DNA of 64,000 nucleotides from Pavona decussata. Lineage: Eukaryota. A model generated the notes under the pieces. The model saw only the letters and a program-made list of their open reading frames with translations, ran no database searches and was not told where the DNA came from. This document shows, one piece after another, positions 3,234 to 61,848 of this stretch. A program made the translations under genes and the position numbers. The stretch covers positions 3,348,001-3,412,000 of the forward strand of contig CDRNST010000060.1 in NCBI GenBank assembly GCA_977016875.1, in the 5' to 3' direction. Within the stretch, counting starts at the first letter, position 1; every line of letters starts with the position of its first letter.

Positions 3234-3270
<37 letters not shown>

Positions 3271-24200: not shown

Positions 24201-25192
24201 ATGGCCGCCGAGTGATAAGGGTCTATTCCAACCATTTGGTTGTTCTCAAGTCAAAAACAATCTTATTGTATTGCTTGGGAGACTTTGCTTGAACATTAAC
24301 CTTCTTTGCATTTGGTGATCATTTTCGTTATTCTCATGAACTACACGTTTGATCAAGTAGCCGATTGTTGTAAGGAGAAAATAGATTCATGTCACTATTG
24401 AGGCTAGAAGGATATGTAAATGAGAAACTTAAAGGGTCAGTTATTAAAAGACAGTTTTAGACGGTGTTTAACAGAACCACGTTCTAAGCCATCTTCAATT
24501 TTGCCAACAATCATATCTAAACATTGTCTACGGCCGACGATAATAAGAAGGCTTTCATCACAGACATGAAAACTATTTATCTACTTAAAATAAACCACTT
24601 ATGACCAGATTTAGAGGCCCATACCCACTGATTGTCTTAAGCCGGGGCTTAAGTTAGACTCTGTTTAAATAACTGGCCATAAAGGTTTGAGTTTCCCAAT
24701 AAGACTAACTCTATTTTTAGCCAAAGCTTTAACGCCAAATTTGTGATCTCGTTTTCCCGCCAAAAATATCAAAATACGAAAATAAAACGTTGTTGAATTG
24801 TAGACCTTTATAATACCAAGTATGCTTCAAACTTTGAGAATAATTGGATAAAAAGCAAAAATATTACTACTAAATGGCTCACAATGGCCGGAAATTTAAT
24901 TTTACAAAAGTTGTATGATGTTGCCTTCCATATTCTCAGGGNNNNNNNNNNNNNNNNNNNNNNNNNNNNNNNNNNNNNNNNNNNNNNNNNNNNNNNNNNN
25001 NNNNNNNNNNNNNNNNNNNNNNNNNNNNNNNNNNNNNNNNNNNNNNNNNNNNNNNNNNNNNNNNNNNNNNNNNNAAGCAAAGACATGCAAAAATAACAGA
25101 GAGATCTAAGGCTTTTTTTTATTTTTTCTCTTGATAATGGAGTCAAAATGACTCCGAAACGTCGAGCCTTAAATCTCTCTGTTATTTTTGCA

Positions 25193-25271
<79 letters not shown>

Positions 25272-28200: not shown

Positions 28201-31200
28201 GCAGGGTCAAGGCCAAAAAGGCAAACAAAAACATATAACACAGAAGTTGTCAGGTTTCATAACCATTGCCTTTAATTAACTATGTTAGGAGCGACTGAGC
28301 GTGCAACTGATGGCACGCGCGAGAAAGCAAGTAAAGATATCTGAACACGGGTTAAACGTGCGCAAACAAAGTCACGATTGATTTTTGCTTTGCTTTTAAT
28401 TGGTCGAAATTAGCATCTTGTTTGGTGTGATCACAGGTCCCAGAGAAGTTCTGTTCAATCGTACAAGACAGATCTCACCTTATTAATTCCAAAAACATGT
28501 TTACTTTGTACCAAAAACATTGCCTAAACAAACTTCTTTTGAATTTTAAACGTTTTCTGGTTCCATTTCCTTCTATATGGAACGGTTTCCGCCTTGTTTA
28601 CCTGCATATACCGCGGACCAAAAGTACTGTGGGCTCACAAGGTTACGAAAGGTTGGCTTATTGTGAAAGAGGAGTCTTATTTTTCTTGCCGATTCGTTTT
28701 TCGTTAGGAAAGCTTCCCTTTCCGAAGAAAATTCGTTGCCCTTCGGACAAGGATTATCGACTGTAAAGTAAACATGAAGGAAATCGTACCAGGAGCCAGA
28801 GGGATATAGAAGCAGAAATCGTATACAATACAGAAGGATTTCATTTTGGCAATCTTTATTCTACAAAGTAAACATGTTTTGGAATTTCCAATAATGTGTC
28901 AGGTGTCTTGTACGTTGGAAGTAAATTCTCTGAACTCTGTAGTATGATTGGTGAGAGCAAGCTAGCGAATTTTTAGCCAATTAAAGTCGGCATAGCAAAC
29001 CTAAACCAACGCAAAACAGCAATACTTTCGGTTTTAAATTATTATCTCATTACTTCACCCAATCGACTCGGAAAGTTTAATGCTTTAGTCAAAATCAATA
29101 TTTCAAGATAAAATAAGTCTCCTGCAAGTTTGAATTTTTAAACGATTTCACGTTATTTTCTCCCATTTGGAGTGTATTCATTGTTAAATCTTACAGTCAA
29201 CCCAGGTCACGCGTGAACGATATTTTTGAAATTTGAACGGAGTTTTGAAATTTACATGTCAGTTTTTAAAATCGCCAACGAGATTTCAGAGTTCCCGTAT
29301 AAATTTCCCTAGTTTATTGACAGTATAAAGCTATGAATTTTTCTTTACATTGCAAAATTGAATATTTCAAGAATAACAATTGTTTCCCAAGTATTTTGAA
29401 TCTTTTTTTCAGTTAATGCGTCTTTTTCGGAACGATTTCCAGAGAGATGTCCAACATTTCATTCACACGTCGGACATTTAATACAAAGAGAAACTCGAAT
29501 GTTCATTTCATTCTTGGAATTACTGTTTACGCGTGACCTGGATTGACTGTAAGTACTTTCATGTTCAAGATATTAAAACTTAAACAGTGATCTCAAAGTA
29601 ATCCATTTTTTTATTACCTGGGCAGGGGTCTAAGTTACATGGCCGTGTCTCGTTTCTAGGTCCCACGCAGTCTGAACCATTGTTGATTGGAGGAGGACTG
29701 GTGCAGTTCCGGTATCGTACCTGGGTACCATTCCCACAAGTGGAACTACACGGTCCATAGGAACCCCAGTTTGAAAAGCCACCATCGACTATGAAAAGCA
29801 AAAGGAAATATTACAGATTGATTTGCAATGCTATCAAAATGTATTTGCTCTTCAATGTTTTTTTTTACAAAGAAGACCAATGAAATCAATATTCACGCCG
29901 TTTTTCCTGATTCTTTAATATTTCGCTTCAGTGTTTGTGGGAGTTAGTTCTCCAGAGTGGGAGCCATTGTACTTTCATTTAAGATGCATGGATAATAAAT
30001 AAAATTGTTTGTTATTATTTAACGTCGGCGGCCCAGGTTACCAAACACGCCTTTTATATAAACTCATCTTAAACCGTCTGAGTACATCGATATACCGTAA
30101 TTATTCTATGGTGTTCATGCAACAGATAAAATTAATTAATTACTTAAATAATTAATTAATAAACAAACAAGTAATAAATTTTCTTTAATAACGTTGACTC
30201 AAAAAAATGCACTGCTTACCTGCCAACTGCACTCCAAACGTATCACTGATGTTTTGCACGAAAGATGGCACAACGTTTGTTAACACAGTTCTGTTCAGTG
30301 TAACAGAAGTGTTTCCATCGGCTGGCAAGCGAACGTAGAACTTAATTTGCAGCGGACTGTTCACCAATGGAAATCCCGGAAGAAGATATACCCGAGTTTG
30401 ATTTGACCTAAACAAGGAAGAGTAGCAGGACAAAATATTATTTAGGCTATGTGGTAAGTCGGTGGTTTTCTAAAAAATCAACAACTTCAACTACAACTTT
30501 ATTGTAGTTTTTGGTAAATTTTACGTAACATTTTCGCTATCCGAAAAAGCGAAAAGTGCATAATCCAGGCGTGCAGCAAGGGAAGAAAGTCAAGATGTCA
30601 AGTATATGTGTGTAGTTTAAAAGTGTTACAAAGACAGATCATTTTTAAGGTAAACCAAAGTCCTCAAAAACACCCTACCGTTAAGCTAAAAGATGAATAT
30701 TTTAACTTACCCGTCATCACATAATCCAGATGAGCGGCAGAAAGCGTTGACGAACTCAATCAGTACTCTCTTAAACTCTTCTTCTCGTGCACACCACTGA
30801 AAGATTTAATTGATTTTTTCGTTTTCAGTTTTTAAGCATTTCAGTCCTTTTTTTCTGTACAGTGAACATAGACTAAAACGTCTTCAAAACGGTTGTTTAG
30901 TAAGGCGCTAACAGTTTGTCTTATCGTTCTACAAATTCCCTCGTGCACTGAAAACGTTTGTGAGGCGTCGCAGGACCATTAAAAGATGACGCCTTCTTTT
31001 AAACTATACCCTAAGTCACTGTCGACAGTTGCACTCCTCAGAGGTCAGGGTGCCAAACGGATGGAGGGAGTTCCAGGAACCCGAAATGTTTCGCCATAGC
31101 GCCCAAAATGCGAATCCTTTCTTCTCGGATCCCGAACAAAATTGCTCATTCAGGTACGAAGGATTTTCTCCGCCACTTTATTGGATCACTCGGCTGAAAC

Positions 31201-34200
31201 GAGTTTACTGAGGATAGGGAACACCAAAACAAGACCCTATGAAAATCCTTGGGAATGCAACAAACGACTGCAAAAATCTCCTACTGATCTTAAGATTCTT
31301 CATGGCACCAGGGGCTAGATTCACAAAGACCTTCTAACTTAACATGTATCTTAGATATTGTTTCTTAACAAAGGCCTTTTCTTGGAATAACAAGAGACTA
31401 CTGTTCAAAACCAATACTTAGGATACATGTTAACTTAGTAAATCTTTGTGAACAGGTCCTGGAGATAGATTCATGAAACTCTCCTAAGTTAGATATATCC
31501 TAAGTATTGTTTCCTGACAGAAGTGTAGTGTTGGAATAACAATAGCATATTGTTAAGAAACAATATTTACGATACATTTTAAGTTAGGAGGGCTTCATGA
31601 ATGTGGCCCCAGGAGCCATAAACTCCTAATTGGGACCATCAAAGTTGATGCCAAAATATGTCCTTTCAGAAAGTTTTAAAACACTGGCCAAAACATACCA
31701 TTTCAACGTGTAATTTAACATTTTACAGGTTCAATCACTGATTAGTTGCACACGAAAGTTAAATTTAAGTTCAAATATGTGTCTAACCCGATTTCAACTT
31801 CACCAGTAAGGTTTGAAATTGTTGTGATTAACGTGCAGTTTGGAAAGTGAGCAGAATGTTACGCCGCTCTTTTGTGAATCCGAGTCACGTTTACCATCAT
31901 AAGCGCACTTAAGAAAATGAACAATAAGGACAAACCTCTGTAATAGTGAAATTTGAAAAAGTAAAAGTAAAAGCATTATCGGTGTCCTCTTGTGATGGAA
32001 TGCGACGAACAATGCCACAGGGCGGTGGTGGGGCTGTTGCTGACGGAGCTGGTGTGCTTGACGGAGCTAGTGTGCCTGACGGAGCTGGTGTGCCTGGTGG
32101 AGCTAGTGTGCCTGACGGGGCTAGTGTGCCTGACGAGGCTGGTGTGCCTGACGGAGCTGGTGTGCCTGGTGGAGCAGGAGTGCTTGATGGAGCTGGTGTG
32201 CCTGGTGGAGCAGGTGTGCTTGATGGAGCTGGTGTGCCTGATGGAGCTGGTGCGCCTGACGGAACTGGTGTACCTGACAGAGCTGGTGTGCCTGACGGAG
32301 CTGGTGTGCCTGGTGGAGCAGGTGTGCTTGATGGAACCGGTGTGCGTGACGCAGCTAATGTGCCTGGTGGAGCTGGTGTGCCTGACGGAGCTGGTGTGCC
32401 TGGTGGAGCTGGTGTGCCGGACGGAGTTGGTGTGCCTGGTGGAGCTGTTGTTGGAACTGTTGTTTTTGATTAGAAGTATTAAAGAGGTATAAAAGAATGA
32501 ATTTAAAAGAACTCAATCTATCACCACGACATTTATCACTAAGTGACAATATCCTCAATAATATCCCTAAGAATGCAATTACAATCTATAACTTGTTTAA
32601 TTGTGGAAAGTAACGATGAGAGAAATCGGGAGATCTCTCTACTAAGTAAGAACGAATGAATGGACAGACGGAGAAATGGACGATGGATGCCGGAATGGAT
32701 GGATGATGGATGGAAGACTGACTAGTTGGATGGAAGAACAGACGGAAGCAAAATACCCTAAAAAACAAAACAAAACAAACGAACACTCTGCTAAAGGAGG
32801 TACTCGGTTTTCTTCCGCTCAAAAAAATGTTAACTGCTTGAGATTGACGTGATACCTAAAATTATCTCAAAAAACCGAGAGCAAGATAGATGATCCTTAG
32901 TACTTGATGACTCGTGATCTTCGTAGAAAATAAATCTACTGCCATTTTTAATATTAAAATCACCATGAAGGAAAACGACAGTGAAACTATTAACATCTTC
33001 ATAACTTTCTTCGATGCTCTTGTGTAGGCGTCAGACGTTCGCCGATACTCGTTGTCTATAGATTAGAAGGTAGAGTTTCTGTGCTTTTTTGGCCGGTCTA
33101 CTGGCAAGTGAGTTGAAGATGGCATTCAGGAGGGAAACCGATGTTAAATGAAACAGGAATGGCTAAACGGTTTACCTGGGCAGGGGTCTGGGTTACATGG
33201 CCGTGTCTCGTTTCTAGGTCCCACGCAGTCTGAACCATTGTTGATCGGAGGAGGACTGGTGCAGTTCCGGTATCGTACCTGGGTACCATTCCCACAAGTG
33301 GAACTACACGGTCCATAGGAACCCCAGTTTGAAAATCCGCCATCGACTATGAAAAGCAAAAGGAAAAATTACAGATTGATTTGCAATGCTATCAAAATGT
33401 ATTTGCTCTTCAATTTTTTTTTTTACAAAGATGACTAATGAAATCAATATTCACGCCGTTTTTCCTGTTTCTTTAATATTTCGCTGCAGTGTTTGTGGGA
33501 GTTAGTTCTCTAGAGTGGGAGCCATTGTACTTTCATTTAAGTTGCATGGATAATAAATAAAATTGTTCGTTATTAGTTAACGTCTAAGGGCAAGGATAAT
33601 AAGAACGCCTTTTACATGAACTCATTTCAAACCGTCTGAGTACAACGATATACCGTAATTATTCTATGACGTTCATGCAACAGCTAAATTAATTAATTCA
33701 TTCATTAATTAACAAATAAATAATAAATTTCCTTTAATCACGTTGACTCAAAATAATTCACTGCTTACCAGCCAACTGCACTCCAAACGTATCACTGATG
33801 TTTTGCACGAAAGATGGCACAACGTTTGTTAACACAGTTCTGTTCAGTGTAACAGAAGTGTTTCCATCGGCTGGCAAGCGAACGTAGAACTTAATTTGCA
33901 GCGGACTGTTCACCAATGGAAATCCCGGAAGAAGATATACCCGAGTTTGATTTGACCTAAACAAGGAAGATTAGAAGGACAAAATATTATTTAGGCTATG
34001 TGGTAAGTCGGTGTAGTTCTAATAAATCAACAACTTCAACTACAACTTTATTGTAGTTTTTGGTAAATTTTACGTAACATTTTCGCTATCCCAAAAAGCG
34101 AAAAGTGCATAATCCAGGTGTGCAGCAAGGGAAGAAAGTCAAGATGTCAAGTATATGTGTGTAGTTTAAAAGTGTTACAAAGACAGATCATTTTTAAGGT

Positions 34201-37200
34201 AAACCAAAGTCCTCAAGAACACCCTACCGTTAACTTAAAAGATGAATATTTTAACTTACCCGTCATCACATAATCCAGATGAGCGGCAGAAAGCGTTGAC
34301 GAACTCAATCAGTACTCTCTTAAACTCTTCTTCTCGTGCACACCACTGAAAGATTTAATTGATTTTTTCGTTTTTAGTTTTTAAGCATTTCAGTCATTTA
34401 TTTCTGTACAGTGAACATAGACTAAAACGTCTTCAAAACGGTTGTTTAGTAAGGCGCTAACAGTTTGTCTTATCGTTTTACAAATTCCCTCGTGCACTGA
34501 AAACGTTTGTGAGGCGTCGCAGGACCATTAAAAGATGACGCCTTCTTTTAAACTATACCCTAAGTCACTGTCGACAGTTGCACTCCTCAGAGGTCAGGGT
34601 GCCAAATGGATGGAGGGAGTTCCAGGAACCCGAAATGTTTCGCCATAGCGCCCAAAATGCGAATCCTTTCTACTCGGATCCCGAACAAAATTGCTCATTC
34701 AGGTACGAAGGATTTTCTCCACTACTTTATTGGTTCACTCGGCTGAAACGAGTTTACTGAGGATAGGGAACACCAAAACAAGACCCTATGAAAATCCTTG
34801 GGAATGCAACAAACGACTGCAAAAATCTCCTACTGATCTTAAGATTCTTCATGGCACCAGGGGCTAGATTCACAAAGACCTTCTAACTTAACATGTATCT
34901 TAGATATTGTTTCTTAACAAAGGCCTTTTCTTGGAATAACAAGAGACTACTGTTCAAAACCAATACTTAGGATACATGTTAACTTAGTAAATCTTCGTGA
35001 ACAGGTCCTGGAGATAGATTCATGAAACTCTCCTTAGTTAGATATATACTAAGTATTGTTTCCTGACAGAAGTGTAGTGTTGGAATAACAATGGCATATT
35101 GTTAAGAAACAATATTTACGATACATTTTAAGTTAGGAGGGCTTCATGAATGTGGCCCCAGGAGCCATGAACTTCTAATTGGGACCATCAAAGTTGATGC
35201 CAAAATATGTCCTTTCGAGAAGTTTCAAAACACTGGCCAAAACATACCATTTCAACGTGTAATTTAACATTTTACAGGTTCAATCACTGATTAGTTGCAC
35301 ACGAAAGTTAAATTTAAGTTCAAATATGTGTCTAACCGGATTTCAACTTCACCAGTAAGGTTTGAAATTGTTGTGATTAACGTGCAGTTTGGAAAGTGAG
35401 CACAATGTTACGCCGTTCTTTTGTGAATCCGAGTCACGTTTACTATCATAAGCGCACTTAAGAAAATGAACAATAAGGACAAACCTCTGTAATAGTGAAA
35501 TTTGAAAAAGTAAAAGTAAAAGCATTATCGGTGTCCTCTTGTGATGGAACGCGACGAACAATGCCACAGGGCGGTGGTGGGGCTGTTGCTGACGGAGCTG
35601 GTGTGCTTGACGGAGCTAGTGTGCCTGACGGAGCTGGTGTGCCTGGTGGAGCTAGTGTGCCTGACGGGGCTAGTGTGCCTGACGGAGCTGGTGTGCCTGG
35701 TGGAGCTGGTGTGCCTGACGGAGCTGGTGTGCCTAACGGAGCTAGTGTGCCTGGTGGAGCAGGAGTGCTTGATGGAGCTGGTGTGCCTGGTGGAGCAGGT
35801 GTGCCTGATGGAGCTGGTGTGCCTGACGGAACTGGTGTGCCTGACAGAGCTGGTGTGCCTGACGGAGCTGGTGTGCCTGGTGGAGCAGGTGTGCTTGATG
35901 GAGCTGGTATGCGTAGTGTGCCTGGTGGAGCTGGTGTGCCTGACGGAGCTAGTGTGCCTGACGGAGCTGGTGTGCCTGGTGGAGCAGGTGTGCCTGACGG
36001 AGCTGGTGTGCCTGGTGCAGCTGGTGTGCCGGACGGAGCTGGTGTGCCTGGTGGAGCTGTTGTGTTTAGTGGAGCTGGTGTGCCTGATGGTGCTGGTGTT
36101 CCTGGGGGGGCAGGTGTGCTTGATGGAGTTGGTGTCCCTGACGGAGCTGGTGTGCCTGGTGGAGTTGTTGTTGGAACTGTTGTTTTTGATTACAAGTATT
36201 AAAGAGGTATAAAAGAATGAATTTAAAAGAACTCAATCTATCACCACGACATTTATCACTAAGTGACAATATCCCCAATAATATCCCTAAGAATGCAATT
36301 AGAAAGTATAACCTGTTTAATTGTGGAAAGTAACGATGAGAGAAATCGGGAGATCTCTCTACTAAGTAAGAACGAATAAATGGACAGACGGAGAAATGGA
36401 CGATGGATGCCGGAATGGATGGATGATGGATGGAAGACTGACTAGTTGGATGGAAGAACAGACGGAAGCGAAATACCTAAAAATCAAAACAAAACAAACG
36501 AACACTCTGCTAAAGGAGGTACTCGGTTTTCTTTCGCTCAAAAAATTGTTAACTGCTTGAGATTGACGTGATACCTAAAATTATCTCAAAAAGCCGAGAG
36601 CAAGATAGATGATCCTTAGTACTTGATGACTCGTGATCTTCGTAGAAACTAAATCTACTGCCTTTTTTGATATTAAAATCGCCATGAAGGAAAACGACAG
36701 TGAAACTATTAACATCTTCATAACTTTCTTCGATGCTCTTGTGTAGGCGTCAGACGTTCGCCGATACTCGTTGTCTATAGATTAGAAGGTAGAGTTTCTG
36801 CGTTTTTTTGGCCGGTCTACTGGCAAGTGAGTTGAAGATGGCATTCAGGAGTGAAACGGATGTTAAATGAAACAGGAATTGCTAAACGGTTTACCTGGGC
36901 AGGGGTCTGGGTTACATGGTCGTGTCTCGTTCGTAGGTCCCACACAGTCTGAACCATTGTTGATTGGAGGAGGGTTAGTGCAGTTGCGGTATCGTACCTG
37001 GGTACCATTCCCACAAGTGGAACTACACGGTCCATAGGAACCCCAGTTTGAAAATCCGCCATCGACTATGAAAAGCAAAAGGAAAAATTACAGATTGATT
37101 TGCAATGCTATCAAAATGTATTTGCTCTTCAATTTTTTTTTTTACAAAGATGACTAATGAAATCAATATTCACGCCGTTTTTCCTGTTTCTTTAATATTT

Positions 37201-40200
37201 CGCTGCAGTGTTTGTGGGAATTAGTTCTCTAGAGTGGGAGCCATTGTACTTTCATTTAAGTTGCATGGATAATAAATAAAATTGTTCGTTATTAGTTAAC
37301 GTCTAAGGGCAAGGATAATAAGAACGCCTTTTACATGAACTCATTTCAAACCGTCTGAGTACAACGATATACCGTAATTATTCTATGACGTTCATGCAAC
37401 AGCTAAATTAATTAATTCATTCATTAATTAACAAATAAATAATAAATTTCCTTTAATCACGTTGACTCAAAATAATTCACTGCTTACCAGCCAACTGCAC
37501 TCCAAACGTATCACTGATGTTTTGCACGAAAGATGGCACAACGTTTGTTAACACAGTTCTGTTCAGTGTAACAGAAGTGTTTCCATCGGCTGGCAAGCGA
37601 ACGTAGAACTTAATTTGCAGCGGACTGCTCACCAATGGAAATCCCGGAAGAAGATATACCCGAGTTTGATTTGACCTAAACAAGGAAGATTAGAAGGACA
37701 AAATATTATTTAGGCTATGTGGTAAGTCGGTGTAGTTCTAATAAATCAACAACTTCAACTACAATTTTATTGTAGTTTTTGGTAAATTTTACGTAAAATT
37801 TTCGCTATCCCAAAAAGCGAAAAGTGCATAATTCAGGCATGCAGCAAGGGAAGAAAGTCAAGATGTCAAGTATATGTGTGTAGTTTAAAAGTGTTACAAA
37901 GACAGATCATTTTTAAGGTAAACCAAAGTCCTCAAAAACACCCTACCGTTAACCTAAAAGATGAATATTTTAACTTACCCGTCATCACATAATCCAGATG
38001 AGCGGCAGAAAGCGTTGACGAACTCAATCAGTACTCTCTTAAACTCTTCTTCTCGTGCACACCACTGAAAGATTTAATTGATTTTTTCGTTTTTAGTTTT
38101 TAAGCATTTCAGTCATTTATTTCTGTACAGTGAACATAGACTAAAACGTCTTCAAAACGGTTGTTTAGTAAGGCGCTAACAGTTTGTCTTATCGTTCTAC
38201 AAATTCCCTCGTGCACTGAAAACGTTTGTGAGGCGTCGCAGGACCATTAAAAGATGACGCCTTCTTTTAAACTATACCCTAAGTCACTGTCGACAGTTGC
38301 ACTCCTCAGAGGTCAGGGTGCCAAATGGATGGAGGGAGTTCAAGGAACCCGAAATGTTTCGCCATAGCGCCCAAAATGCGAATCCTTTCTACTCGGATCC
38401 CGAACAAAATTGCTCATTCAGGTACGAAGGATTTTCTCCACTACTTTATTGGTTCACTCGGCTGAAACGAGTTTACTAAGGATAGGGAACACCAAAACAA
38501 GACCCTATGAAAATCCTTGGGAATGCAACAAACGACTGCAAAAATCTCCTACTGATCTTAAGATTCTTCATGGCACCAGGGGCTAGATTCACAAAGACCT
38601 TCTAACTTAACATGTATCTTAGATATTGTTTCTTAACAAAGGCCTTTTCTTGGAATAACAAGAGACTACTGTTCAAAACCAATACTTAGGATACATGTTA
38701 ACTTAGTAAATCTTCGTGAACAGGTCCTGGAGATAGATTCATGAAACTCTCCTTAGTTAGATATATACTAAGTATTGTTTCCTGACAGAAGTGTAGTGTT
38801 GGAATAACAATGGCATATTGTTAAGAAACAATATTTACGATACATTTTAAGTTAGGAGGGCTTCATGAATGTGGCCCCAGGAGCCATGAACTTCTAATTG
38901 GGACCATCAAAGTTGATGCCAAAATATGTCCTTTCGAGAAGTTTCAAAACACTGGCCAAAACATACCATTTCAACGTGTAATTTAACATTTTACAGGTTC
39001 AATCACTGATTAGTTGCACACGAAAGTTAAATTTAAGTTCAAATATGTGTCTAACCGGATTTCAACTTCACCAGTAAGGTTTGAAATTGTTGTGATTAAC
39101 GTGCAGTTTGGAAAATGAGCACAATGTTACGCCGTTCTTTTGTGAATCCGAGTCACGTTTACCATCATAAGCGCACTTAAGAAAATGAACAATAAGGACA
39201 AACCTCTGTAATAGTGAAATTTGAAAAAGTAAAAGTAAAAGCATTATCGGTGTCCTCTTGTGATGGAACGCGACGAACAATGCCACAAGGCGGTGGTGGG
39301 GCTGTTGCTGACGGAGCTGGTGTGCTTGACGGAGCTAGTGTGCCTGACGGAGCTGGTGTGCCTGGTGGAGCTACTGTGCCTGACGGGGCTAGTGTGCCTG
39401 ACGGAGCTGGTGTGCCTGGTGGAGCTGGTGTGCCTGATGGATCTGGTGTGCCTGACGGAGCTGGTGTGCCTGGTGGAGCAGGAGTGCTTGATGGAGCTGG
39501 TGTGCCTGGTGGAGCAGGTGTGCTTGATGGAGCTGGTGTACCTGATGGAGCTGGTGTGCCTGAAGGAACTGGTGTGCCTGACGTAGCTGGTTTGCCTGGT
39601 GGAGCAGGTGTGCTTGATGGAACCGGTGTGCGTGACGGAGCTAATGTGCCTGGTGGACTTGGTGTGCCTGACGGAGCTGGTGTGCCTGGTGGAGCAGGTG
39701 TGCTTGATGGAGCTGGTGTGCGTGGTGTGCCTGGTGGAGCTGGTGTGCCTGACGGAGCTGGTGTGCCTGGTGGAGCTGGTGTGCCTGACGCAGCTGGTGT
39801 GCCTGGTGGAGCTGTTGTTGGAACTGTTGTTTTTGATTAGAAGTATTAAAGAGGTATAAAAGAATGAATTTAAAAAAACTCAATCTATTACCACGACATT
39901 TATCACTAAGTGACAATATCCTCAATAATATCCCTAAGAATGCAATTACAATGTATAACCTGTTTAATTGTGGAAAGTAACGATGAGAGAAATCGGGAGA
40001 TCTCTCTACTAAGTAAGAACAAATGAATGGACAGACGGAGAAATGGACGATGGATGCCGGAATGGATGGATGATGGATGGAAGACTGACTAGTTGGGTGG
40101 AAGAACAGACGGAAGCGAAATACCTAAAAAACAAAACAAAACAAACGAACACTCTGCTAAAGGAGGTACTCGGTTTTCTTCCGCTCAAAAAAATGTTAAC

Positions 40201-43200
40201 TGCTTGAGATTGACGTGATACCTAAAATTATCTCAAAAAACCGAGAGCAAGATAGATGATCCTCAGTAATTGATGACTCGTGATCTTCGTAGAAAATAAA
40301 TCTACTGCCATTTTTAATATTAAAATCGCCATGAAGGAAAACGACAGTGAAACTATTAAAATCTATATAACTTTCTTCGATGCTCTTGTGTAGGCGTCAG
40401 ACGTTCGCCGATACTCGTTGTCTATAGATTAGAAGGTAGAGTTTCTGTGCTTTTTTGGCCGGTCTACTGGAAAGTGAGTTGAAGATGGCAATTAAGAGGG
40501 AAACCGATGTTAAATGAAACAGGAATTGCTAAACGCTTTACCTGGGCAGGGGTCTGGGTTACATGGCCGTGTCTCGTTTCTAGGTCCCACGCAGTCTGAA
40601 CCATTGTTGATCGGAGGAGGACTGGTGCAGTTGCGGTATCGTACCTGGGTACCATTTCCACAAGTGGAACTACACGGTCCATAGGAACCCCAGTTTGAAA
40701 AGCCGCCATCGACTATGAAAAGCAAAAGGAAAAATTACAGATTGATTTGCAATGCTATCAAAATGTATTTGCTCTTCAATTTTTTTTTTACAAAGATGAC
40801 TAATGAAATCAATATTCACGCCATTTTTCCTGTTTCTTTAATATTTCGCCTCAGTGTTTGTGGGAGTTAGTTCTCCAGAGTGGGAGCCATTGTACTTTCA
40901 TTTAAGATGCATGGATAATAAATAAAATTGTTCGTTATTAGTTAACGTCTAAGGGCAAGGATAATAAGAACGCCTTTTACATGAACTCATTTCAAACCGT
41001 CTGAGTACAACGATATACCGTAATTATTCTATGACGTTCATGCAACAGCTAAATTAATTAATTCATTCATTAATTAACAAATAAATAACAAATTTCCTTT
41101 AATCACGTTGACTCAAAAAAATTCACTGCTTACCAGCCAACTGCACTCCAAACGTATCACTGATGTTTTGCACGAAAGATGGCACAACGTTTGTTAACAC
41201 AGTTCTGTTAAGTGTAACAGAAGTGTTTCCATCGGCTGGCAAGCGAACGTAGAACTTAATTTGCAGCGAACTGTTCACCAATGGAAATCCCGGAAGAAGA
41301 TATACCCGAGTTTGATTTGACCTAAACAAGGAAGAGTAGAGGGACAAAATATTATTTAAGCTATGTGGTAAGTCGGTATAGTTCTAATAAATCAACAACT
41401 TCAACTACAACTTTATTGTAGTTTTTGGTAAATTTTACGTAACATTTTCGCTATCCGAAAAAGCGAAAAGTGCATAATCCAGGCGTGCAGCAAGGGAAGA
41501 AAGTCAAGATGTCAAGTATATCTGTGTAGTTTAAAAGTGTTACAAAGACATCATTTTTAAGGTAAACCAAAGTCCTCAAAAACACCCTACCGTTAACCTA
41601 AAAGATGAATATTTTAACTTACCCGTCATCACATAATCCAGATGAGCGGCAGAAAGCGTTGACGAACTCAATCAGTACTCTCTTAAACTCTTCTTCTCGT
41701 GCACACCACTGAAAGATTTAATTGATTGTTTCGTTTTCAGTTTTTAAGCATTTCAGTCATTTATTTCTGTACAGTGAACATAGACTAAAACGTCTTGAAA
41801 ACGGTTGTTTAGTAAGGTGCTAACAGTTTGTCTTATCGTTCTACAAATTTCCTCGTGCACTGAAAACGTTTGTGAGGCGTCGCAGGACCATTAAAAGATG
41901 ACGCCTTCTTTTAAACTATACCCTAAGTCACTGTCGACAGTTGCACTCCTCAGAGGTCAGGGTGCCAAACGGATGGAGGGAGTTCCAGGAACCCGAAATG
42001 TTTCGCCATAGCGCCCAAAATGCGAATCCTTTCTACTCGGATCCCGAACAAAATTGCTCATTCAGGTACGAAGGATTTTCTCCACCTCTTAATTGGTTCA
42101 CTCGGCTGAAACGAGTTTACTGAGGATAGGGAACACCAAAACAAGACCCTATGAAAATCCTTGGGAATGCAACAAACGACTGCAAAAATCTCCTACTGAT
42201 CTTAAGATTCTTCATGGCACCAGGGGCTAGATTCACAAAGACCTTCTAACTTAACATGTATCTTAGATATTGTTTCTTAACAAAGGCCTTTTCTTGGAAT
42301 AACAAGAGACTACTGTTCAAAACCAATACTTAGGATACATGTTAACTTAGCAAATCTCCGTGAACAGGTCCTGGAGATAGATTCATGAAACTCTCCTAAG
42401 TTAGATATATCCTAAGTATTGTTTCCTGACAGAAGTGTAGTGTTGGAATAACAATGGCATATTTTTAAGAAACAATATTTACGATGCATTTTAAGTTAGG
42501 AGGACTTCATGAATGTGGCCCCAGGAGCCATAAACTCCTAATTAAAACACTTGCCAAAACATACCATTTCAACGTGTAATTTAACATTGTACAGGTTCAA
42601 TCACTGATTAGTTGCACACGAAATTTAAATTTAAGTTCAAATATGTGTCTAACCGGATTTCAACTTCACCAGTAAGGTTTGAAATTGTTGTGATTAACGT
42701 GTAGTTTGGAAAGTGAGCACAATGTTACGCCGTTCTTTTGTGAATCCGAGTCACGTTTACCATCATAAGCCCACTTAAGAAAATGAACAATAAGGACAAA
42801 CCTCTGTAATAGTGAAATTTGAAAAAGTAAAAGTAAAAGCATTATCGGTGTCCTCTTGTGATGGAACGCGACGAACAATGCCACAGGGCGGTGGTGGGGC
42901 TGTTGCTGACGGAGCTGGTGTGCTTGACGGAGCTAGTGTGCCTGACGGAGCTGGTGTGCCTGGTGGAGCTAGTGTGCCTGACGGGGCTAGTGTGCCTGAC
43001 GGAGCTGGTGTGCCTGGTGGAGCTGGTGTGCCTGACGGAGCTGGTGTGCCTGCTGGAGCAGGAAAGCTTGATGGAGCTGGCGTGCCTGGTGGAGAAGGTG
43101 TGCTTGATGGAGCTGGTGTGCCTGATGGAGCTAGTGTGCCTGACGGAACTGGTGTGCCTGAAGGAGCTGGTGTGCCTGGTGGAGCAGGTGTGCTTGATGG

Positions 43201-46200
43201 AGCTGGTGTGCGTGACGGAGCTAATGTGCCTAGTGGAGCTGGTGTGCCTGACGGAGCTGGTGTGCCTGGTGGAGCAGGTGTGCTTGATGGAACCGGTGTG
43301 CGTGACGGAGCTAATGTGCCTGGTGGAGCTATTGTGCCTGACGGAGCTGGTGTGCCTGGTGGAGCAAGTGTGCTTGATGGAGCTGGTGTGCGTGGTGTGC
43401 CTGGTGGAGCTGGTGTACCTGACGGAGCTGGTGTGCCTGACGGAGCAGGTGTGCCTGGTGGAGCAGGTGTGCCTGACGGAGCTGGTGTGCCTGGTGGAGC
43501 TGGTGTGCCGGACGGAGCTGGTGTGCCTGGTGGAGCTGTTGTTGGAACTGTTGTTTTTGATTAGAAGTATTAAAGAGGTATAAAAGAATGAATTTAAAAA
43601 AAACTCATTCTATCACCACGACATTTATCACTAAGTGACAATATGCTCAATAATATCCCTAAGAATGCAATTACAATGTATAACCTGTTTAATTGTGGAA
43701 AGTAACGATGAGAGAAATCGGGAGATCTCTCTACTAAGTAAGAACAAATGAATGGACAGACGGAGAAATGGACGATGGATGCCGGAATGGATGGATGATG
43801 GATGGAAGACTGACTAGTTGGATGGAAGAAAAGACGGAAGCGAAATACCTAAAAAACAAAACAAAACAAACGAACACTCTGCTAAAGGAGGTACTCGGTT
43901 TTCTTCCGCTCAAAAAATTGTTAACTGCTTGAGATTGACCTGATACCTCAAATTATCTCAAAAAGCCGAGAGCAAGATAGATGATCCTCAGTAGTTGATG
44001 ACTCGTGATCTTCGTAGAAAATAAATCTACTACCATTTTTAATATTAAAATCGCCATGAAGGAAAACGAGAATGAAACTATTAACATCTTCATAACATTT
44101 TTTTCGATGCTCTTGTGCAGGCGTCAAACGTTTGCCGATACTCGTCTATAGATTAGAAGGTAGAGTTTCTGTGCTTTTTTGGCCGGTCTACTGGCAAGTG
44201 AGTTGAAAATGACATTCAGGAGGGAAACCGATGTTAAATGAAACAGGAATTGCTAAACGCTTTACCTGGGCAGGGGTCTGGGTTACATGGCCGTGTCTCG
44301 TTTCTAGGTCCCACGCAGTCTGAACCATTGTTGATCGGAGGAGGACTGGTGCAGTTCCGGTATCGTACCTGGGTACCATTTCCACATGTGGAACTACACG
44401 GTCCATAGGAACCCCAGTTTGAAAAGCCGCCATCGACTATGAAAAGCAAAAGGAAAAATTACAGATTGATTTGCAATGCTATCAAAATGTATTTGCTCTT
44501 CGATTTTTTTTTTACAAAGAAGACCAATGAAATCAATATTCACGCCGTTTTTCCTGTTACTTTAATATTTCGCTTCAGTGCTTGTAGGAGTTAGTTCTCC
44601 AGAGTGGCAGCCATTGTACTTTCATTTAAGATGCATGAATAATAAATAAAATTGTTCGTTATTATATCACGTCTAAGGGCAAGGATAATAAGAACGCTTT
44701 TTACATGAACTCATCTCAAACCGTCTGAGTACAACGATATACCGTAATTATTCTAGGATGTTCATGCAACAGCTAAATTAATTAATTTATTTATTAATTA
44801 ACAAATAAATAATAATTTTTTTTTAATAACGTTGACACAAAATAATTCACTGCTTACCAGCCAACTGCACTCCAAACGTATCACTGATGTTTTGCACGAA
44901 AGATGGCACAACGTTTGTTAACACAGTTCTGTTCAGTGTAACAGAAGTGTTTCCATCGGCTGGCAAGCGAACGTAGAACTTAATTTTCAGCGGACTGTTC
45001 ACCAATGGAAATCCCGGAAGAAGATATACCCGAGTTTGATTTGACCTAAACAAGGAAGATTAGAAGGACAAAATATTATTTACGCTATGTGGTAAGTCGG
45101 TGTAGTTCTAATAAATCAACAACTTCAACTACAACTTTATTGTATTTTTTGGTATATTTTACGTAACATTTTCGCTATCCGAAAAAGCGAAAAGTGCATA
45201 ATCCAGGCGTGCAGCAAGAGAAGAAAGTCAAGATGTCAAGTATATGTGTGTAGTTTAAAAGTGTTACAAAGACAGATCATTTTTAAGGTAAACCAAAGTC
45301 CTCAAAAACATCCTACCGTTAACCTAAAAGATGAATATTTTAACTTACCCGTCATTACATAATTCAGATGAGCTGCAGAAAGCGTTGACGAACTCAATCA
45401 GTACTCTCTTAAACTCTTCTTCTCGTGCACACCACTGAAAGATTTAATTAATTTTTTCCTTTTCAGTTTTCAAGCATTTTAGTCATTTATTTCTGTACAG
45501 TGAACATAGACGAAACCTTCTTCGAAACGGTTGTTTAGTAAGGTGCTAACAGTTTGTCTTATCGTTCTACAAATTCCCTCGTGCACTGAAAACGTTTGTG
45601 AGGCGTCGCAGGACCATTAAAAGATGACGCCTTCTTTTAAACTATACCCTAAGTCACTGTCGACAGTTGCACTCCTCAGAGGTCAGGGTGCCAAACGGAT
45701 GGAGGGAGTTCCAGGAACCCGAAATGTTTCGCCATAGCGCCCAAAATGCGAATCCTTTCTACTCGGATCCCGAACAAAATTGCTCATTCAGGTACGAAGG
45801 ATTTTCTCCACCACTTTATTGGTTCACTCGGCTGAAACGAGTTTACTGAGGATAGTGAACACCAAAACAAGACCCTATGAAAATCCTTGGGAATGCAACA
45901 AACGACTGCAAAAATCTCCTACTGATCTTAAGATTCTTTATGGCACCAGGGGCTAGATTCACAAAGACCTTCTAACTTAACATGTATCTTAGATATTGTT
46001 TCTTAACAAAGGCCTTTTCTTGGAATAACAAGAGACTACTGTTCAAAACCAATACTTAGGATACATGTTAACTTAGTAAATCTTCGTGAACAGGTCCTGG
46101 AGATAGATTCATGAAACTCTGCTAAGTTAGATATATCCTAAGTATTGTTTCCTGACAGAAGTGTAGTGTTGGAATAACAATAGCATATTGTTAAGAAACA

Positions 46201-49200
46201 ATATTTACGATACATTTTAAGTTAGGAGGGCTTCATGAATGTGGCCGCAGGAGCCATAAACTCCTAATTGGGACCATCAAAGTTGATGCCAAAATATGTC
46301 CTTTCAGAAAGTTTTAAAACACTTGCCAAAACACACCATTTTAAGGTGTAATTTAACATTTTCCAGGTTCAATCACTGACTAGTTGCACACGAAAGTTAA
46401 ATTTGAGATCAAATATGTGTCTAACCGGATTTCAACTTCACCAGTAAGGTTTGGAATTGTTGTGATTAACGTGTAGTTTGGAAAGTGAGCACAATGTTAC
46501 GCCGTTCTTTTGTGAATCTGAGTCACGTTTACCATCGTAAGTGCACTTAAGAAAATGAACAATAAGGACAAACCTCTGTAATAGTGAAATTTGAAAACGT
46601 AAGAGAAAAAGCATTATCGGTGTCCTCTTGTGATGGAACTCGACGAACAATGCCACAGGGCGGTGGTGGGGCTGTTGCCGACGGAGCTGGTGTGCTTGAC
46701 GGAGCTAGTGTGCCTGACGGAGCTGGTGTGCCTGGCGGAGCTTGTGTTCCTGACGGAGTTGGTGTGCCTGATGGAACTGGTGTGCCTGACGGAGCTGGTG
46801 TGCCTGATGGAGCTGGTGTGCCTGACGGAGCTGGTGTGCCTGGTGGAGCAGGTGTGCCTGATGGAGCTGGTGTGCTTGATGGAGCTGGTGTGCCTGACGG
46901 AGCTGGTGTGCCTGGTGGAGCAGGTGTGCCTGATGGAGCAGGTGTGCTTGATGGAGCTGGTGTGCCTGACGGAGCTAATGTGCCTGATGGAGCTGGTGTG
47001 CCTGACGGAGCTGGTGTGCCTGGTGGAGCTGTTGTTGGAACTGTTGTTTTTGATTAGAAGTATTAAAGAAGTAGAAAAGAATGAATTTAAAAGAACTCAA
47101 TCTATCACCACGACATTTATCACTAAGTGACAATATCCTCAATAATATCCCTAAGAATGCAATTAGAAAGTATAACCTGTTTAATTGTGGAAAGAAACGA
47201 TCATAGAAATCGGAAGATCTCTCTACTAAGTAAGAACGAATGAATGGACAGACGGAGAAATGGACGATGGATGCCAGAATGTATGGATGGTGGATGGAAG
47301 ACTGACTAGTTGGATGGAAGAACAGACGGAAACGAAATACCTAAAAAACAAAACAAACGAACACTCTGCTAAAGGAGGTACTCGGTTTTCTTCCGCTCAA
47401 AAAATTGTTAACTGCTTGAGATTGACGTGATACCTAAAGTTATCTCAAAAAGCCGAGAGCAAGATAGATGATCGTTAGTAGTTGATGACTCGTGATCTTC
47501 GTAGAAACTAAAACCACTGCCATTTTTGATATTAAAATCGCCATGAAGGAAAACGACAGTGAAGCTATTAACATCTTCATAACTTTCTTTGATGGTCTTG
47601 TGTAGGCGTCAGACGTTCGCCGATACACGTTGTCTATAGACTAGAAGGCAGAGTTTCTGTGTTTTTTTGGCCGGTCTACTGGCAAGTGATTTCAAGATGG
47701 CGTTCAGGAGTGAAACCGATGTTAAATGAAGCAGGAATTGCTAAACGGTTTACCTGGGCAGGGGTCTGGGTTACATGGTCGTGTCTCGTTCGTAGGTCCC
47801 ACACAGTCTGAACCATTGTTGATTGGAGGAGGGTTAGTGCAGTTGCGGTATCGTACCTGGGTACCATTCCCACAAGTGGAACTACACGGTCCATAGGAAC
47901 CCCAGTTTGAAAAGCCGCCATCGACTATGAATAAACAGAACGACGAAAAGGTTTAAAATGCTATCAAAATTTTTACAATAACTGTCCAAATTCCCGCGCG
48001 CTGATTGGCTCGTAGCTATTGTCTATAAGAGTACAGACAATAAAAATGACGTCAGATGTAACGCGCGCGCTTTCTCAACGAAAAAAATAGCCAATTCCGC
48101 TCGTACTTTTTCCATGTTATTGTAAAAAACAAATCGACGGCATTTTTCTATGGTCTATACTCTTATAGACCATAAAATGACGCCATAAAATGTCCAAAAC
48201 TTGGCAGTGAAACCACTCGCCTGCGGCTCGTGGTTCCACTTGAGTTTTGAACATTTTTTGACGTCATTTTATGGTCTATAAGAGTATAGACCATAGGAAA
48301 GTGCCGTCGATTTGTTAAGTAATTGTTTTTGAAGACCTATACGTTAAGAAGACCTATACGTAATTAATATCCAAAGTCTTGATCCTGGTTTGTTTTTTTC
48401 TAGTTTCGCTCCAGACCAGTGTTTCGGAGAGTTACTTTCTCTAGAGTGGGACCTTTTTGGCCTAGAATTCGATAGAATAACAAGAACGTGTTTGGTATGA
48501 ACTCATCTCAACCGTTTTAGTGAAAAGGTATAGCTTAATGATTCTGTGCTGTTCATGGAACAGATAAAATTAATAAATTAATGACCAAAGAAAAAGTAAA
48601 CTTGATTTAATGACGATGACTCATTTAGTGAAACTATAAAAAATATTTACTGCTTACCAGCCAACTGCACTCCAAACGTATCACTGATACTTTGCACGAA
48701 AGATGGCACAACGTTTGTTAACACAGTTCTGTTTAGTATAATAGAAGTGTTTCCATCGGCTTGCGAGCGAACGTAGAACTTAATTTGCAGCGGACTGTTC
48801 ACGAATGGAGATCCTGGAAGAAGATATACCCGAGTTCGATTTGTCCTAAAGAAGGAAGAGTAGAGGTGCAAAATATTATTTAGGCTATGTGGTAGGTCGG
48901 TGTAGTTCCAATATATAGACAACTTAAACTTTCAATTTTGTTATTTTTTCGTAAATTTTACGTAAAAGAGATCATTTGTAAGATAAACCAAAGTCCCCAA
49001 ACTGACCTAACGCTACAATGTAGCCTAAAATATGAATATTGTAACTTACCCAGCATCACATAACCCACTTGAGTTGCAGAAAGCGTTGACGTCCTCAGTA
49101 ACTACTTTCTTAAAGTCTCCTTCTCGTACACACCACTGAAAAATTTAATTTTTTTTTTCTTTTCAGTTTGTAAGCATTTCTGTCACATTTCTGTATAGTT

Positions 49201-58801: not shown

Positions 58802-58802
<1 letters not shown>

Positions 58803-61387: not shown

Positions 61388-61848
61388 CTATGAAAGGCGG
61401 CCCTAAACAAATAAGTTAGCTTTCGACAACTATTACCTGTTCCAAAGTTCATAAAGGGACTGGGCCCCAGTTTACACATTGTTCAAACTGCGTCTTTTAA
61501 AGAAATGAATCCAATCGCGATAAAGATCACACAAAAATTACTAGGTTTACCAAGTTTGGTTACGTTTCATTGCGTAGTAACCAGACTGTAACCTTTCAAA
61601 GGTCCCCCAAATCCATGCAATATAATTCTCTAATTTTTAAGATTTTAGATTTCCTTCCACGTAATTTCAATCTAACAACAGAGCAATAAACTTAGTAAAC
61701 GGACTAATTTTAATGTGATCTTTCTTGCCATGGACACCAATTTCTGACTAAATAAAAATTTAAAAAAAACGGGTCGCCAATCTCTTTGAAATTCGGAACG
61801 GGCAATTGGCTACGAAAGGGTTAGTTTCAGGTTTAAGAAATGGCATAC

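Follow-up and report, generated by a model that had tools for sequence, protein, structure and literature searches.

This locus raises the question of whether a run of nearly identical exon groups, found in the 64,000-nt stretch of Pavona decussata DNA analysed here (the window), is genuine, which kind of protein it encodes, and whether that protein varies in length at two levels, through the number of exon groups and through an in-frame minisatellite that each of them carries. Our results point, with good confidence, to the modular stalk of a scleractinian coral MUC4-like transmembrane mucin, in which a minisatellite-bearing cassette has been amplified; on this reading, alleles most probably encode extracellular stalks that differ in length by hundreds of residues, and also in how many TSP1 repeats and alpha/beta modules are spaced along them.

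Five tandem repeat-bearing units (cassettes B-F) of 3.5-3.7 kb each (3,488-3,724 nt) lie at 29618-47753 on the minus strand, and direct-repeat families are spaced 3.49-3.80 kb apart, with 93-100% identity. Each cassette is composed of four exons: a Pro/Thr/Ser linker exon, two exons of an alpha/beta module (86 and 188 nt) and a TSP1 exon (171 nt). The last three are constant in length in all five cassettes and the linker exon is variable (Table 1). All exons of B-F have AG acceptors, GT donors and zero stop codons, every coding total is a multiple of 3, and the intron phases run 1 to 0, 0 to 2, 2 to 1 and 1 to 1, with outer borders in phase 1. The earlier note had described five such phase-1-to-phase-1 cassettes with fixed and variable exons, as well as a 110-nt repeat-free linker in cassette A, and both descriptions are matched to the base. 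It had placed the block at 29630-47930; the five-cassette array is real, but its limits have to be redrawn, since 47930 includes the TSP1 exon of cassette A. Cassette A is older and devoid of an array, and cassette G, old and diverged, follows the same plan; a run of N (24942-25074) falls in the last intron of the latter. The four-exon plan is old, as it is found in cassettes A and G and in other coral species.

The minus-strand domain order of the gene is CAP, TSP1, cassettes, NIDO-AMOP-VWD, EGF and putative membrane anchor, and the Pfam families matched are CAP, TSP_1, NIDO, AMOP, VWD, C8-3_MUC4 and EGF_CA. A spliced relative, P0013, bears the NCBI name 'mucin-like protein isoform X2 [Oculina patagonica]'. 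The TSP1 exons lie above the curated family cut-off (56 bits against 21.6 in cassette E, with three others at the E-values of Table 1), and the AMOP match is barely over its own (25.2 bits against 25). EGF-type models match four exons, three of them as EGF_CA; the signal peptide is outside the window. The large Ser/Thr-rich exon at the other end carries a tandem array at 61998-64000, in which a 90-bp unit (30 residues) recurs at least 22 times (Tandem Repeats Finder: 22.3 copies, 88% matches); this is the gene's mucin domain in the classical sense. Pro/Thr/Ser-rich tandem repeats are thus found both in this array and in the five 18-bp arrays of the linkers (34-36% Pro, 29-34% Ser+Thr). Judging from this composition, the linkers are presumably O-glycosylated, and composition and domain order together suggest a glycosylated protein located at the surface.

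Table 1. Features of the mucin gene in the window, in descending order of position (E, Pfam E-value; TRF, Tandem Repeats Finder).
Feature	Position	Strand	Parts	Evidence
Large Ser/Thr-rich exon	61763..64000	-	746 residues; runs off window end	open stretch
CAP (cysteine-rich secretory protein family) exon, same gene	51892..52407	-		CAP E=1.3e-17
TSP1 exon ahead of cassette A	50208..50372	-	165 nt, phase 1 to 1	TSP_1 E=2.2e-16
Cassette A, older, without array	47754..49948	-	linker 49839-49948 (110 nt); exons 49050-49135, 48658-48845; TSP1 47754-47924	
Cassette B, 3,488 nt	44266..47753	-	linker 46574-47040 (467 nt, 20 units); exons 45349-45434, 44858-45045; TSP1 44266-44436; coding 912 nt	TRF 46676-47035
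Cassette C, 3,724 nt	40542..44265	-	linker 42802-43547 (746 nt, 35 units + 9-bp insert); exons 41623-41708, 41134-41321; TSP1 40542-40712; coding 1191 nt	TRF 42906-43542
Cassette D, 3,647 nt	36895..40541	-	linker 39204-39823 (620 nt, 28 units + 9-bp insert); exons 37979-38064, 37488-37675; TSP1 36895-37065; coding 1065 nt	TRF 39308-39818
Cassette E, 3,719 nt	33176..36894	-	linker 35485-36176 (692 nt, 32 units + 9-bp insert); exons 34260-34345, 33769-33956; TSP1 33176-33346; coding 1137 nt	TRF 35589-36164; TSP_1 E=4.4e-15 (33177-33344)
Cassette F, 3,558 nt	29618..33175	-	linker 31936-32456 (521 nt, 23 units); exons 30711-30796 (86 nt), 30220-30407 (188 nt); TSP1 29618-29788 (171 nt); coding 966 nt	TRF 32040-32451
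Cassette G, old, diverged	23738..27510	-	linker 27263-27510 (248 nt, non-repetitive Pro/Thr/Ser); exons 26301-26389 (89 nt), 25571-25770 (200 nt); TSP1 23738-23908 (171 nt); coding 708 nt, in frame	TSP_1 E=3.6e-14
Four more single-exon TSP1 repeats	18559..22116	-	~22116-21949, 21222-21055, 20211-20044, 18723-18559	tblastn; TSP_1 E=1.1e-13 (18550-18957)
MUC4-like C-terminal part	466..18074	-		Pfam
NIDO	15717-16235	-		E=9.8e-09
AMOP	13598-14293	-		E=2e-05
VWD, two matches	12080-12352, 9850-10221	-		E=3.5e-09, 1.7e-04
C8-3_MUC4	8509-8817	-		E=6.7e-12
Calcium-binding EGF (EGF_CA), three exons	5234-5647, 3944-4111, 3286-3453	-		Pfam
EGF-like exon	4543-4794	-		Pfam FXa_inhibition and cEGF models
Putative membrane anchor	in 466-879	-	hydrophobic stretch, ~23 residues	read by eye

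The end of the linker exon and the two fixed exons, which had been labelled 'SEA-like', together encode the module, of about 115 residues and with a predicted alpha/beta structure. This label is unproven, the structural model of the module being of low confidence. SEA (PF01390) gave no match at E up to 10, either with the separate exons or with spliced P0013, which holds the whole module, and a sequence search of the module profile against solved structures found none. The AlphaFold2 model of P0013:62-188 (mean pLDDT 54) has the order strand, helix, strand, helix (a SEA sandwich being strand-helix-strand-strand-helix-strand); with this low-confidence model, Foldseek retrieved nothing from the PDB below E=0.1, the weak rows being ferredoxin-like domains and a chain of MUC16 appearing at rank 39. 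In a language-model feature search, SEA clusters came at ranks 2 and 3 with a score of 0.77, under the level for more than a lead. The autoproteolysis motif G/SVVV, which lies between the second and third strand and concerns cleaving SEA domains only, is absent, nor is there anything GSVVV-like; every cassette has [12 protein letters not shown] at that turn. As the module had only 20 matches among 1.8 billion representative proteins, and all those whose source was looked up were coral or coral-associated records, the module, which has no named family, may be a coral-restricted domain.

The first level of length variation is the 18-bp in-frame minisatellite of the linker exons, which encodes [12 protein letters not shown]. 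Tandem Repeats Finder reports 20 to 36 copies in the five arrays, and the counts obtained by parsing, with one 9-bp (3-residue) insert in each of C, D and E, are the same as those previously proposed, all in frame. Once this insert is removed, the linkers differ in length by multiples of 18; the array of cassette C also shows a 90-bp higher-order period.

The second level, cassette number, is revealed by a second haplotype carried by a long contig (loci L018 and L021 of ENA ERZ25073751 ctg101865). Introns included, identity to the window is 98.7-99.05% in its upstream flank (about 9 kb) and 99.0% in its downstream flank (about 3 kb), and between the two flanks stand three repeat-bearing cassettes instead of five, all intact and in frame, with linkers of 467, 431 and 518 nt and arrays of 20, 18 and 22 units. 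The repeat-bearing cassettes encode 917 residues in this haplotype and 1,757 in the window, a gap of about 840 residues. Each structural form is present on two contigs of the collection, the five-cassette form being 100% identical over A to G in ENA ERZ25073805 ctg131933, a contig probably derived from the reference specimen itself, which so gives no independent biological confirmation. In a related species (L013; 88-92% identical in unique parts, a congeneric level), three cassettes are likewise present at the orthologous locus; their linkers, of 284, 482 and 446 nt, carry about 9, 20 and 18 copies of a different 18-bp unit, TTAPPD. This comparison, which the earlier note had called for, and the second haplotype both speak for its proposal of a length-polymorphic surface protein in which cassette number and array length change independently, and two-tier length variation is supported as real, with the polymorphism itself resting on two haplotypes, of which the second may come from a sibling species and so not be an allele.

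These patterns suggest a history in which the linker gained its 18-bp minisatellite in this lineage, and the whole 3.5-3.7 kb unit was amplified into five tandem copies. In a more distant coral (L014/L015) the linker is non-repetitive, and cassettes group by species, B-F together with 100/99 support. Introns diverge by 1.7-4.9% among B-F, in a mosaic across the array, and they can fairly be called 'almost identical', even though each copy has private variants throughout. A single nucleotide out of 171 separates TSP1-A from TSP1-D, against 9-12 nt between D and its neighbours, and their near-identity is limited to a patch of about 0.2 kb, whose bounds lie 8 nt upstream of the exon and 23 nt downstream, which points to gene conversion between non-adjacent copies. 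The probable causes are unequal crossing-over between cassettes, gene conversion, and gain or loss of units within the arrays through slippage, all read from patterns rather than observed. Array lengths differ among paralogues, haplotypes and species by whole 18-bp units or by the 9-bp insert; it is from paralogues and species that slippage between alleles would be deduced, as the one clearly allelic pair of arrays, B and its counterpart B2, has 20 units on both sides.

A tandem array of 18 kb, made of units 95-99% similar, is what an assembler may expand falsely, and two three-cassette alleles of the colony could in principle have been chained into one, all the more as the runs are kept as contigs only, with no raw long reads spanning the array. 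We nevertheless consider such an artefact highly improbable. The private variants extend along the full length of all five copies, and no cassette of the second half resembles an allele of B: in the pre-linker intron, B and E differ by 4.6%, whereas B and its true allele B2 differ by 0.6%. The sole long-range identity, between TSP1-A and TSP1-D, is a short patch and not a join. Finally, the separate assembly record is identical over A to G, another contig has the same arrangement, and within its contig the window occupies the stretch at about 3.35-3.41 Mb. If the array is genuine, the difference could still be one between species and not within one, should a sibling species, or a lineage that diverged deeply, be the source of the three-cassette contig. 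The two forms are 3-5% apart inside the array, far above the divergence of the flanks, the last linker of the second haplotype has a tail absent from the window, and the samples are metagenome assemblies. We regard this as unlikely, since the flanks, with their introns, are close to 99% identical, against 88-92% for L013, the 110-nt linker of cassette A is the same in both forms, and the array of cassette B shows 3 nt differences in 467.

Length could also vary at the RNA level, by skipping of whole cassettes, as suggested earlier, or of register-shifted exon blocks. The phase-1 borders and the coding totals of the cassettes permit this without a frameshift, but no reliable RNA joint for it was seen among contigs of three runs labelled 'RNA?' (a guessed label; up to three studies), which are unable to resolve near-identical cassettes. 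In these contigs four predicted introns are spliced, two in cassette A or its border and, depending on the run, two or three in cassette B; the TSP1-to-linker joint is also seen. The joints are 47924/48658 for cassette A, where one contig spans both module exons with zero mismatches, and 45434/46574, 45043/45347 (cut +2) and 44436/44858 for cassette B, with CT..AC ends, which are GT..AG on the minus strand. In run X13, one contig does connect the linker A donor (49839) with a module exon further on, the first of a later cassette (45434), a joint that would keep the frame. This contig has, however, 5 mismatches in 112 nt with linker A, and stretches of 32-33 nt are identical between linker A and C-F; as these exceed the 31-letter words of the assembly, contigs could cross from one copy to another, and a chimera is the simpler reading. 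The remaining joints listed within exons of the gene connect adjacent exons or reflect repeat register, and additional variation of length by skipping appears quite unlikely.

Several known systems resemble this stalk in part. In LPA, kringle IV-2 is a tandem, two-exon, in-frame cassette whose allele-variable copy number sets protein size; LPA is a plasma protein and not a mucin, and its cassettes hold no nested minisatellite. MUC16 (CA125) is a membrane mucin with repeats of 156 residues, five exons each, comprising a SEA module and a Ser/Thr-rich stretch (PMC3431878). The coral stalk is similarly a long series of repeats, each with its own small exon set, a folded module and a Ser/Thr-rich stretch; it differs in that its units add a TSP1 repeat and an 18-bp minisatellite of their own in the linker exon, its folded module has no detectable SEA signature, its C-terminal part is MUC4-like, and its copies are few (five recent and two old) and 95-99% alike. 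DMBT1 (salivary agglutinin, gp340) has 7 to 20 SRCR domains per molecule according to the allele, with a high mutation rate in the copy-number variable region (PMC4851238). Here too, repeated exons of allele-variable number encode by turns a binding domain and a short Ser/Thr/Pro spacer, the domain being TSP1 in the coral gene and SRCR in DMBT1. To our knowledge, the SID spacers of DMBT1 are not themselves variable minisatellites. The C-terminal NIDO-AMOP-VWD-EGF order (PMC3748352, PMC9080433) and a large Ser/Thr tandem-repeat exon are shared with MUC4 and with B3EWY9, a 'mucin-like protein' of the skeletal matrix of the coral Acropora millepora, the likeness to B3EWY9 being one of architecture. 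Human MUC4 lacks the CAP domain, TSP1 repeats and internal alpha/beta modules, all three of which are present in the coral gene.

For vertebrates, length polymorphism of mucins and variation in domain copy number belong to the textbooks; for corals, in which loci of this kind are collapsed by short-read assemblies, we know of hardly any documentation. Two long-read haplotypes here reveal an 840-residue difference, at two nested levels, in one surface or matrix mucin, with a third repeat array in the same gene; the locus also calls for caution in coral gene annotation and copy-number calls. The variation could be selected ('tuning') or neutral. It is conceivable, though we would give it little weight, that selection maintains the stalk polymorphism and that the number and spacing of TSP1 repeats, borne by a membrane mucin of variable length and heavy glycosylation, set how the coral colony binds dinoflagellate symbionts or surface bacteria. 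By analogy, DMBT1 domain copy number is reportedly under balancing selection in humans (PMC9038570), and TSR domains promote symbiont colonisation in a sea anemone (PMC5446238). If so, the coral gene would be a cnidarian counterpart of DMBT1, and its cassette number a heritable, fast-mutating determinant of host-microbe specificity as well as a practical marker. Relatives of this protein family are part of the organic matrix of coral skeletons. In view of these relatives and of the role suggested for TSP1 in symbiont uptake by the anemone, the fast-evolving, allele-specific number of TSP1 repeats is a concrete candidate for explaining variation among colonies in adhesion, calcification or microbe binding.

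The repetitive part of the gene resolves, on the minus strand, into five consecutive four-exon cassettes, B to F, each composed of a Pro/Thr/Ser linker exon, two exons encoding an alpha/beta module and a TSP1 exon. The borders were obtained by reading one unit on the minus strand and then locating them in all units with short anchors. Long direct repeats are spaced 3.49-3.80 kb and are 93-100% identical, and Tandem Repeats Finder detects, within 32040-47035, five arrays with an 18-bp period, ranging from 20 to 36 copies. The linker exons of B to F measure 467, 746, 620, 692 and 521 nt and are followed in each cassette by exons of 86, 188 and 171 nt. AG and GT sites are present at 20/20 exons, stop codons are absent, the phases run 1 to 0, 0 to 2, 2 to 1 and 1 to 1, and the coding total of each cassette is divisible by three. 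Parsing of the arrays gave 20, 35, 28, 32 and 23 units, with one 9-bp insert each in C, D and E, the length differences being otherwise whole units; in the maps of unit types the arrays have terminal blocks in common at either end and differ in internal blocks. The linker of the older cassette A is 110 nt long and repeat-free. All the features of this anatomy claimed in an earlier note made from the sequence alone are found: its linker lengths, fixed 171-, 86- and 188-nt exons and open frame match our exon parsing, and its approximate unit counts and 9-bp inserts have the same values in our array parsing. The block itself spans 29618-47753; the upper limit of 47930 given in the note also covers cassette A's TSP1 exon.

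Positions in the window, or exon lengths, of the features of the gene and its surroundings
Feature	Position or length	Strand	Remark
Ser/Thr-rich exon	61763-64000, runs off window	minus	first of the gene's domains in the window, 5' to 3'
90-bp (30-residue) array in Ser/Thr-rich exon	61998-64000	minus	at least 22 copies, 88% identity
Five-cassette block B-F	29618-47753	minus	from exon borders
Cassette G exons	248, 89, 200, 171 nt	minus	old, diverged; four-exon plan as in A-F
Splice joints	44436/44858; 45043/45347 (cut +2); 45434/46574; 47924/48658	minus	'RNA?' contigs
TSP1-to-linker joint	44266 going back to 47040	minus	'RNA?' contigs
N runs	23241-23455 and 24942-25074		left unfilled

The cassettes are embedded in a larger gene, whose domain order was established by Pfam scans exon by exon and whose frame continuity was followed from exon lengths and phases. 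The 90-bp array of its Ser/Thr-rich exon reads as a third repeat tier of the same gene and is a classical mucin domain. CAP, a TSP1 exon, cassette A, cassettes B to F and cassette G come next, 5' to 3', followed by four TSP1 exons, NIDO, AMOP, VWD and C8-3_MUC4, then by four exons matching EGF-type models (calcium-binding EGF for three of the four) and a putative hydrophobic anchor. Judged from its sequence, this is a MUC4-like architecture. Its coral representatives go by the name 'mucin-like protein', which in Acropora belongs to the skeletal matrix (PMC3748352), and those of sea anemones are termed mucin4-like (PMC9080433). The cassette is confined to this locus in the genome (602 Mb, 1,180 contigs), and the stretch is present in sequencing runs labelled coral metagenome.

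Other repeats lie in the introns. An element of about 320 bp (34848-35171, approximately) occupies the intron after the linker exon, at the equivalent place in each of B-F; it matches itself on both strands, is thus palindromic, resembles a miniature inverted-repeat element and has dozens of genomic copies, 71-85% identical, on many contigs. The intron of cassette A between the 188-nt and TSP1 exons is longer than its counterparts (733 nt vs 421) because a very high-copy dispersed repeat sits there, at 47970-48400, with a summed contig word depth of up to 6e5 in the DNA run and of thousands in the 'RNA?' runs (a guessed label), and with many internal joints and loose ends. In cassette G, the last intron has an AAT microsatellite (28 copies, 25192-25276) beside an N run. 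The contigs of run X3 have a greater word depth on the cassettes than on cassette A, a measure that does not report copy number.

To find relatives of the cassette, a profile-free HMMER search was run with the 188-nt exon against 1.8 billion representative proteins. Only 20 proteins matched, 18 of them short ORFs or gene models; two long matches, P0017 and P0020, were discarded as unrelated repetitive proteins. Every looked-up match originates from a coral or coral-associated record, and exact look-ups of the matched ORFs led to long contigs of ENA metagenome assemblies. One of these, ERZ25073751 ctg101865, carries a second form of the locus. Identity to the window is 98.7-99.05% in the upstream flank (about 9 kb) and 99.0% in the downstream flank (3 kb). 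Cassette A of this form is as in the window, and its first array, with 20 units and 3 nt differences, is allelic to that of B. Only three repeat-bearing cassettes stand between A and G, with linkers of 467, 431 and 518 nt and all exons intact; the difference from the window form amounts to 7.7 kb in DNA and to 840 residues in protein. The five- and three-cassette forms were each found on two contigs of the collection. Cassette number therefore differs between the two haplotypes seen and the locus is probably length-polymorphic, as the earlier note had proposed, with five versus three repeat-bearing cassettes between flanks of about 99% identity.

Some peculiarities of this second haplotype can be mentioned. 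The linker exon of its last repeat-bearing cassette (10541-11058 of its locus L021) has a tail reading ..VTTAPPPLSTPQPTIPPPCGTVRR.., which is like the tails of the related species and unlike that of any window cassette, and may be an ancestral segment retained in one haplotype only. The TSP1 exon of the same cassette has a CNLDPCP ending in common with cassette F. Further along, at L021 17772-18125, a simple-repeat ORF overlaps the place homologous to an N run of the window.

Divergence among cassettes B-F is 1.7-4.9% in introns, in line with the 'almost identical introns' of the earlier note, and 1.1-3.8% in exons, every copy bearing private variants over its full length. This divergence is mosaic: D and E are nearly identical only in the part that extends from linker tail through last intron, where the three introns, about 1,860 nt together, show 13 differences (5, 7 and 1). 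Between the TSP1 exons of D and A, which lie 11 kb apart, there is 1 difference in 171 nt, against 9-12 between that of D and its neighbours. A misjoin was considered for this near-identity and ruled out, as the similarity extends past the exon by just 8 nt on the upstream side and 23 nt on the downstream side; the patch is, on this sequence evidence, attributable to gene conversion and not to a join. The same data bear on whether the five-cassette array could be an assembly artefact, which, on the assembled contigs compared, we consider highly improbable. Chaining of two three-cassette alleles could in principle yield five distinct copies, but no cassette of the distal half looks allelic to B: the intron divergence is 4.6% between B and E, against 0.6% between B and its allele in the second haplotype. 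The sole long-range identity is a 0.2-kb patch. Moreover, the identical arrangement is found in a separate assembly record, ERZ25073805 ctg131933, though probably of the same specimen as the reference; between window positions 58802 and 23456 it shows 100% identity outside the N runs, with the five arrays unchanged.

The comparison was extended to orthologous loci. In a related species (ERZ26692669 ctg61294), 88-92% identical to the window in unique parts, there are three cassettes plus G. The linkers of the three, of 284, 482 and 446 nt, consist of a different 18-bp unit, TTAPPD, present about 9, 20 and 18 times. By position, the first of these cassettes is orthologous to A, which is devoid of units in the window: about nine TTAPPD units lie at 1744-2027 of its locus L013 between the same flanking letters as at window 49839-49948, where there are none. 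Either the units of cassette A have collapsed to zero in this genome or they have arisen later in the relative. In a more distant coral, the Pro/Thr/Ser linker is non-repetitive. Array lengths and unit types thus vary among paralogues, haplotypes and species. In trees of two segments, the cassettes group by species, with a support of 100/99 for the B-F clade, indicating that amplification or homogenisation postdates the species split.

The orthologous region of the distant coral is present on two contigs of ENA ERZ25071797 (L014 and L015), which diverge by 1.6% over 2.8 kb and probably represent two haplotypes. In both, the module exon is followed after 1-2 kb by an inserted transposon-like ORF (DUF8422, HTH_animal), and no TSP1 exon was detected within 10 kb. 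Two short NCBI models of Oculina patagonica 'mucin-like protein' (P0013, isoform X2, and P0021, isoform X1) contain a single linker, in which there are four PPDTTT units, together with the alpha/beta module and either one or two TSP1 repeats; the cassette therefore exists in a distant coral family too, apparently annotated as a separate small gene.

The cassettes are transcribed and spliced. When contigs of three runs labelled 'RNA?' were aligned to window 44200-50199, the joints with CT..AC ends (GT..AG on the minus strand) fell exactly on predicted exon borders, and one contig spans both module exons of cassette A with 0 mismatches. The contigs aligned on cassette B carry C-F letters at all three variant sites covered. 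At 30/30 listed sites, a DNA run of another sample agrees with one or more of C-F: with all four at 26 sites, with three at 3 sites and with one at 1 site. Taken together, these results indicate that C-F-type copies are expressed and are present in a second sample. In one further contig, a later cassette's first module exon directly follows linker A; this joint is a probable chimera, since linker A and cassettes C-F have identical runs of 32-33 nt in common and the contigs are built from 31-letter words. Skipping of whole cassettes, as suggested in the earlier note, is thus permitted by intron phase, but the sole contig joint of this type is the probable chimera. Separately, an RNA contig of run X8 has a joint (46891/47754) in which the donor of the cassette A TSP1 exon is followed by TGGAA, the five bases with which a linker exon begins, and then by sequence lying 149 nt into array B; this reflects either repeat register ambiguity or a shorter first array in that sample.

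The folded module had been labelled 'SEA-like', which is not established by our results. No SEA profile matched the module exons or the spliced Oculina relative, and the module sequence matched no solved structure. Its AlphaFold2 model is poor (mean pLDDT 54); the predicted strand-helix-strand-helix order is compatible with SEA and also with many other alpha/beta sandwiches, and Foldseek returned nothing significant with this low-confidence model. SEA clusters appear in a language-model search, at sub-threshold scores only, and the turn at the site of the G/SVVV motif of cleaving SEA domains reads otherwise. Four conserved cysteines suggest two disulfides. We therefore refer to it simply as an unassigned alpha/beta module, which may be a distant SEA domain of the non-cleaving kind.

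Among known arrangements, that of MUC16 is the closest: five exons encode its 156-residue repeat, in which an SEA module is joined to a Ser/Thr-rich stretch (PMC3431878). Next comes DMBT1, with exon-encoded SRCR domains separated by short Ser/Thr/Pro spacers and numbering 7 to 20 per molecule among alleles; one variable region mutates at a rate of 0.7-2.7% per generation (PMC4851238). The coral gene differs in the variable minisatellite nested in every copy-variable cassette, in its folded parts, TSP1 and an unnamed module, and in its MUC4-like chassis with a CAP domain. Our full-text literature search found no paper describing such a nested cassette array in corals, which does not in itself prove that none exists.

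Cassette number could be altered by unequal crossing-over between cassettes, and unit number by replication slippage or unequal exchange inside the arrays, while gene conversion would homogenise the copies. An adaptive 'tuning' of the stalk can be hypothesised, and neutral turnover explains the data equally well. The linkers may act as O-glycosylated stiff spacers and the TSP1 repeats as binding elements, the number and spacing of which would change along with the cassettes and their arrays.
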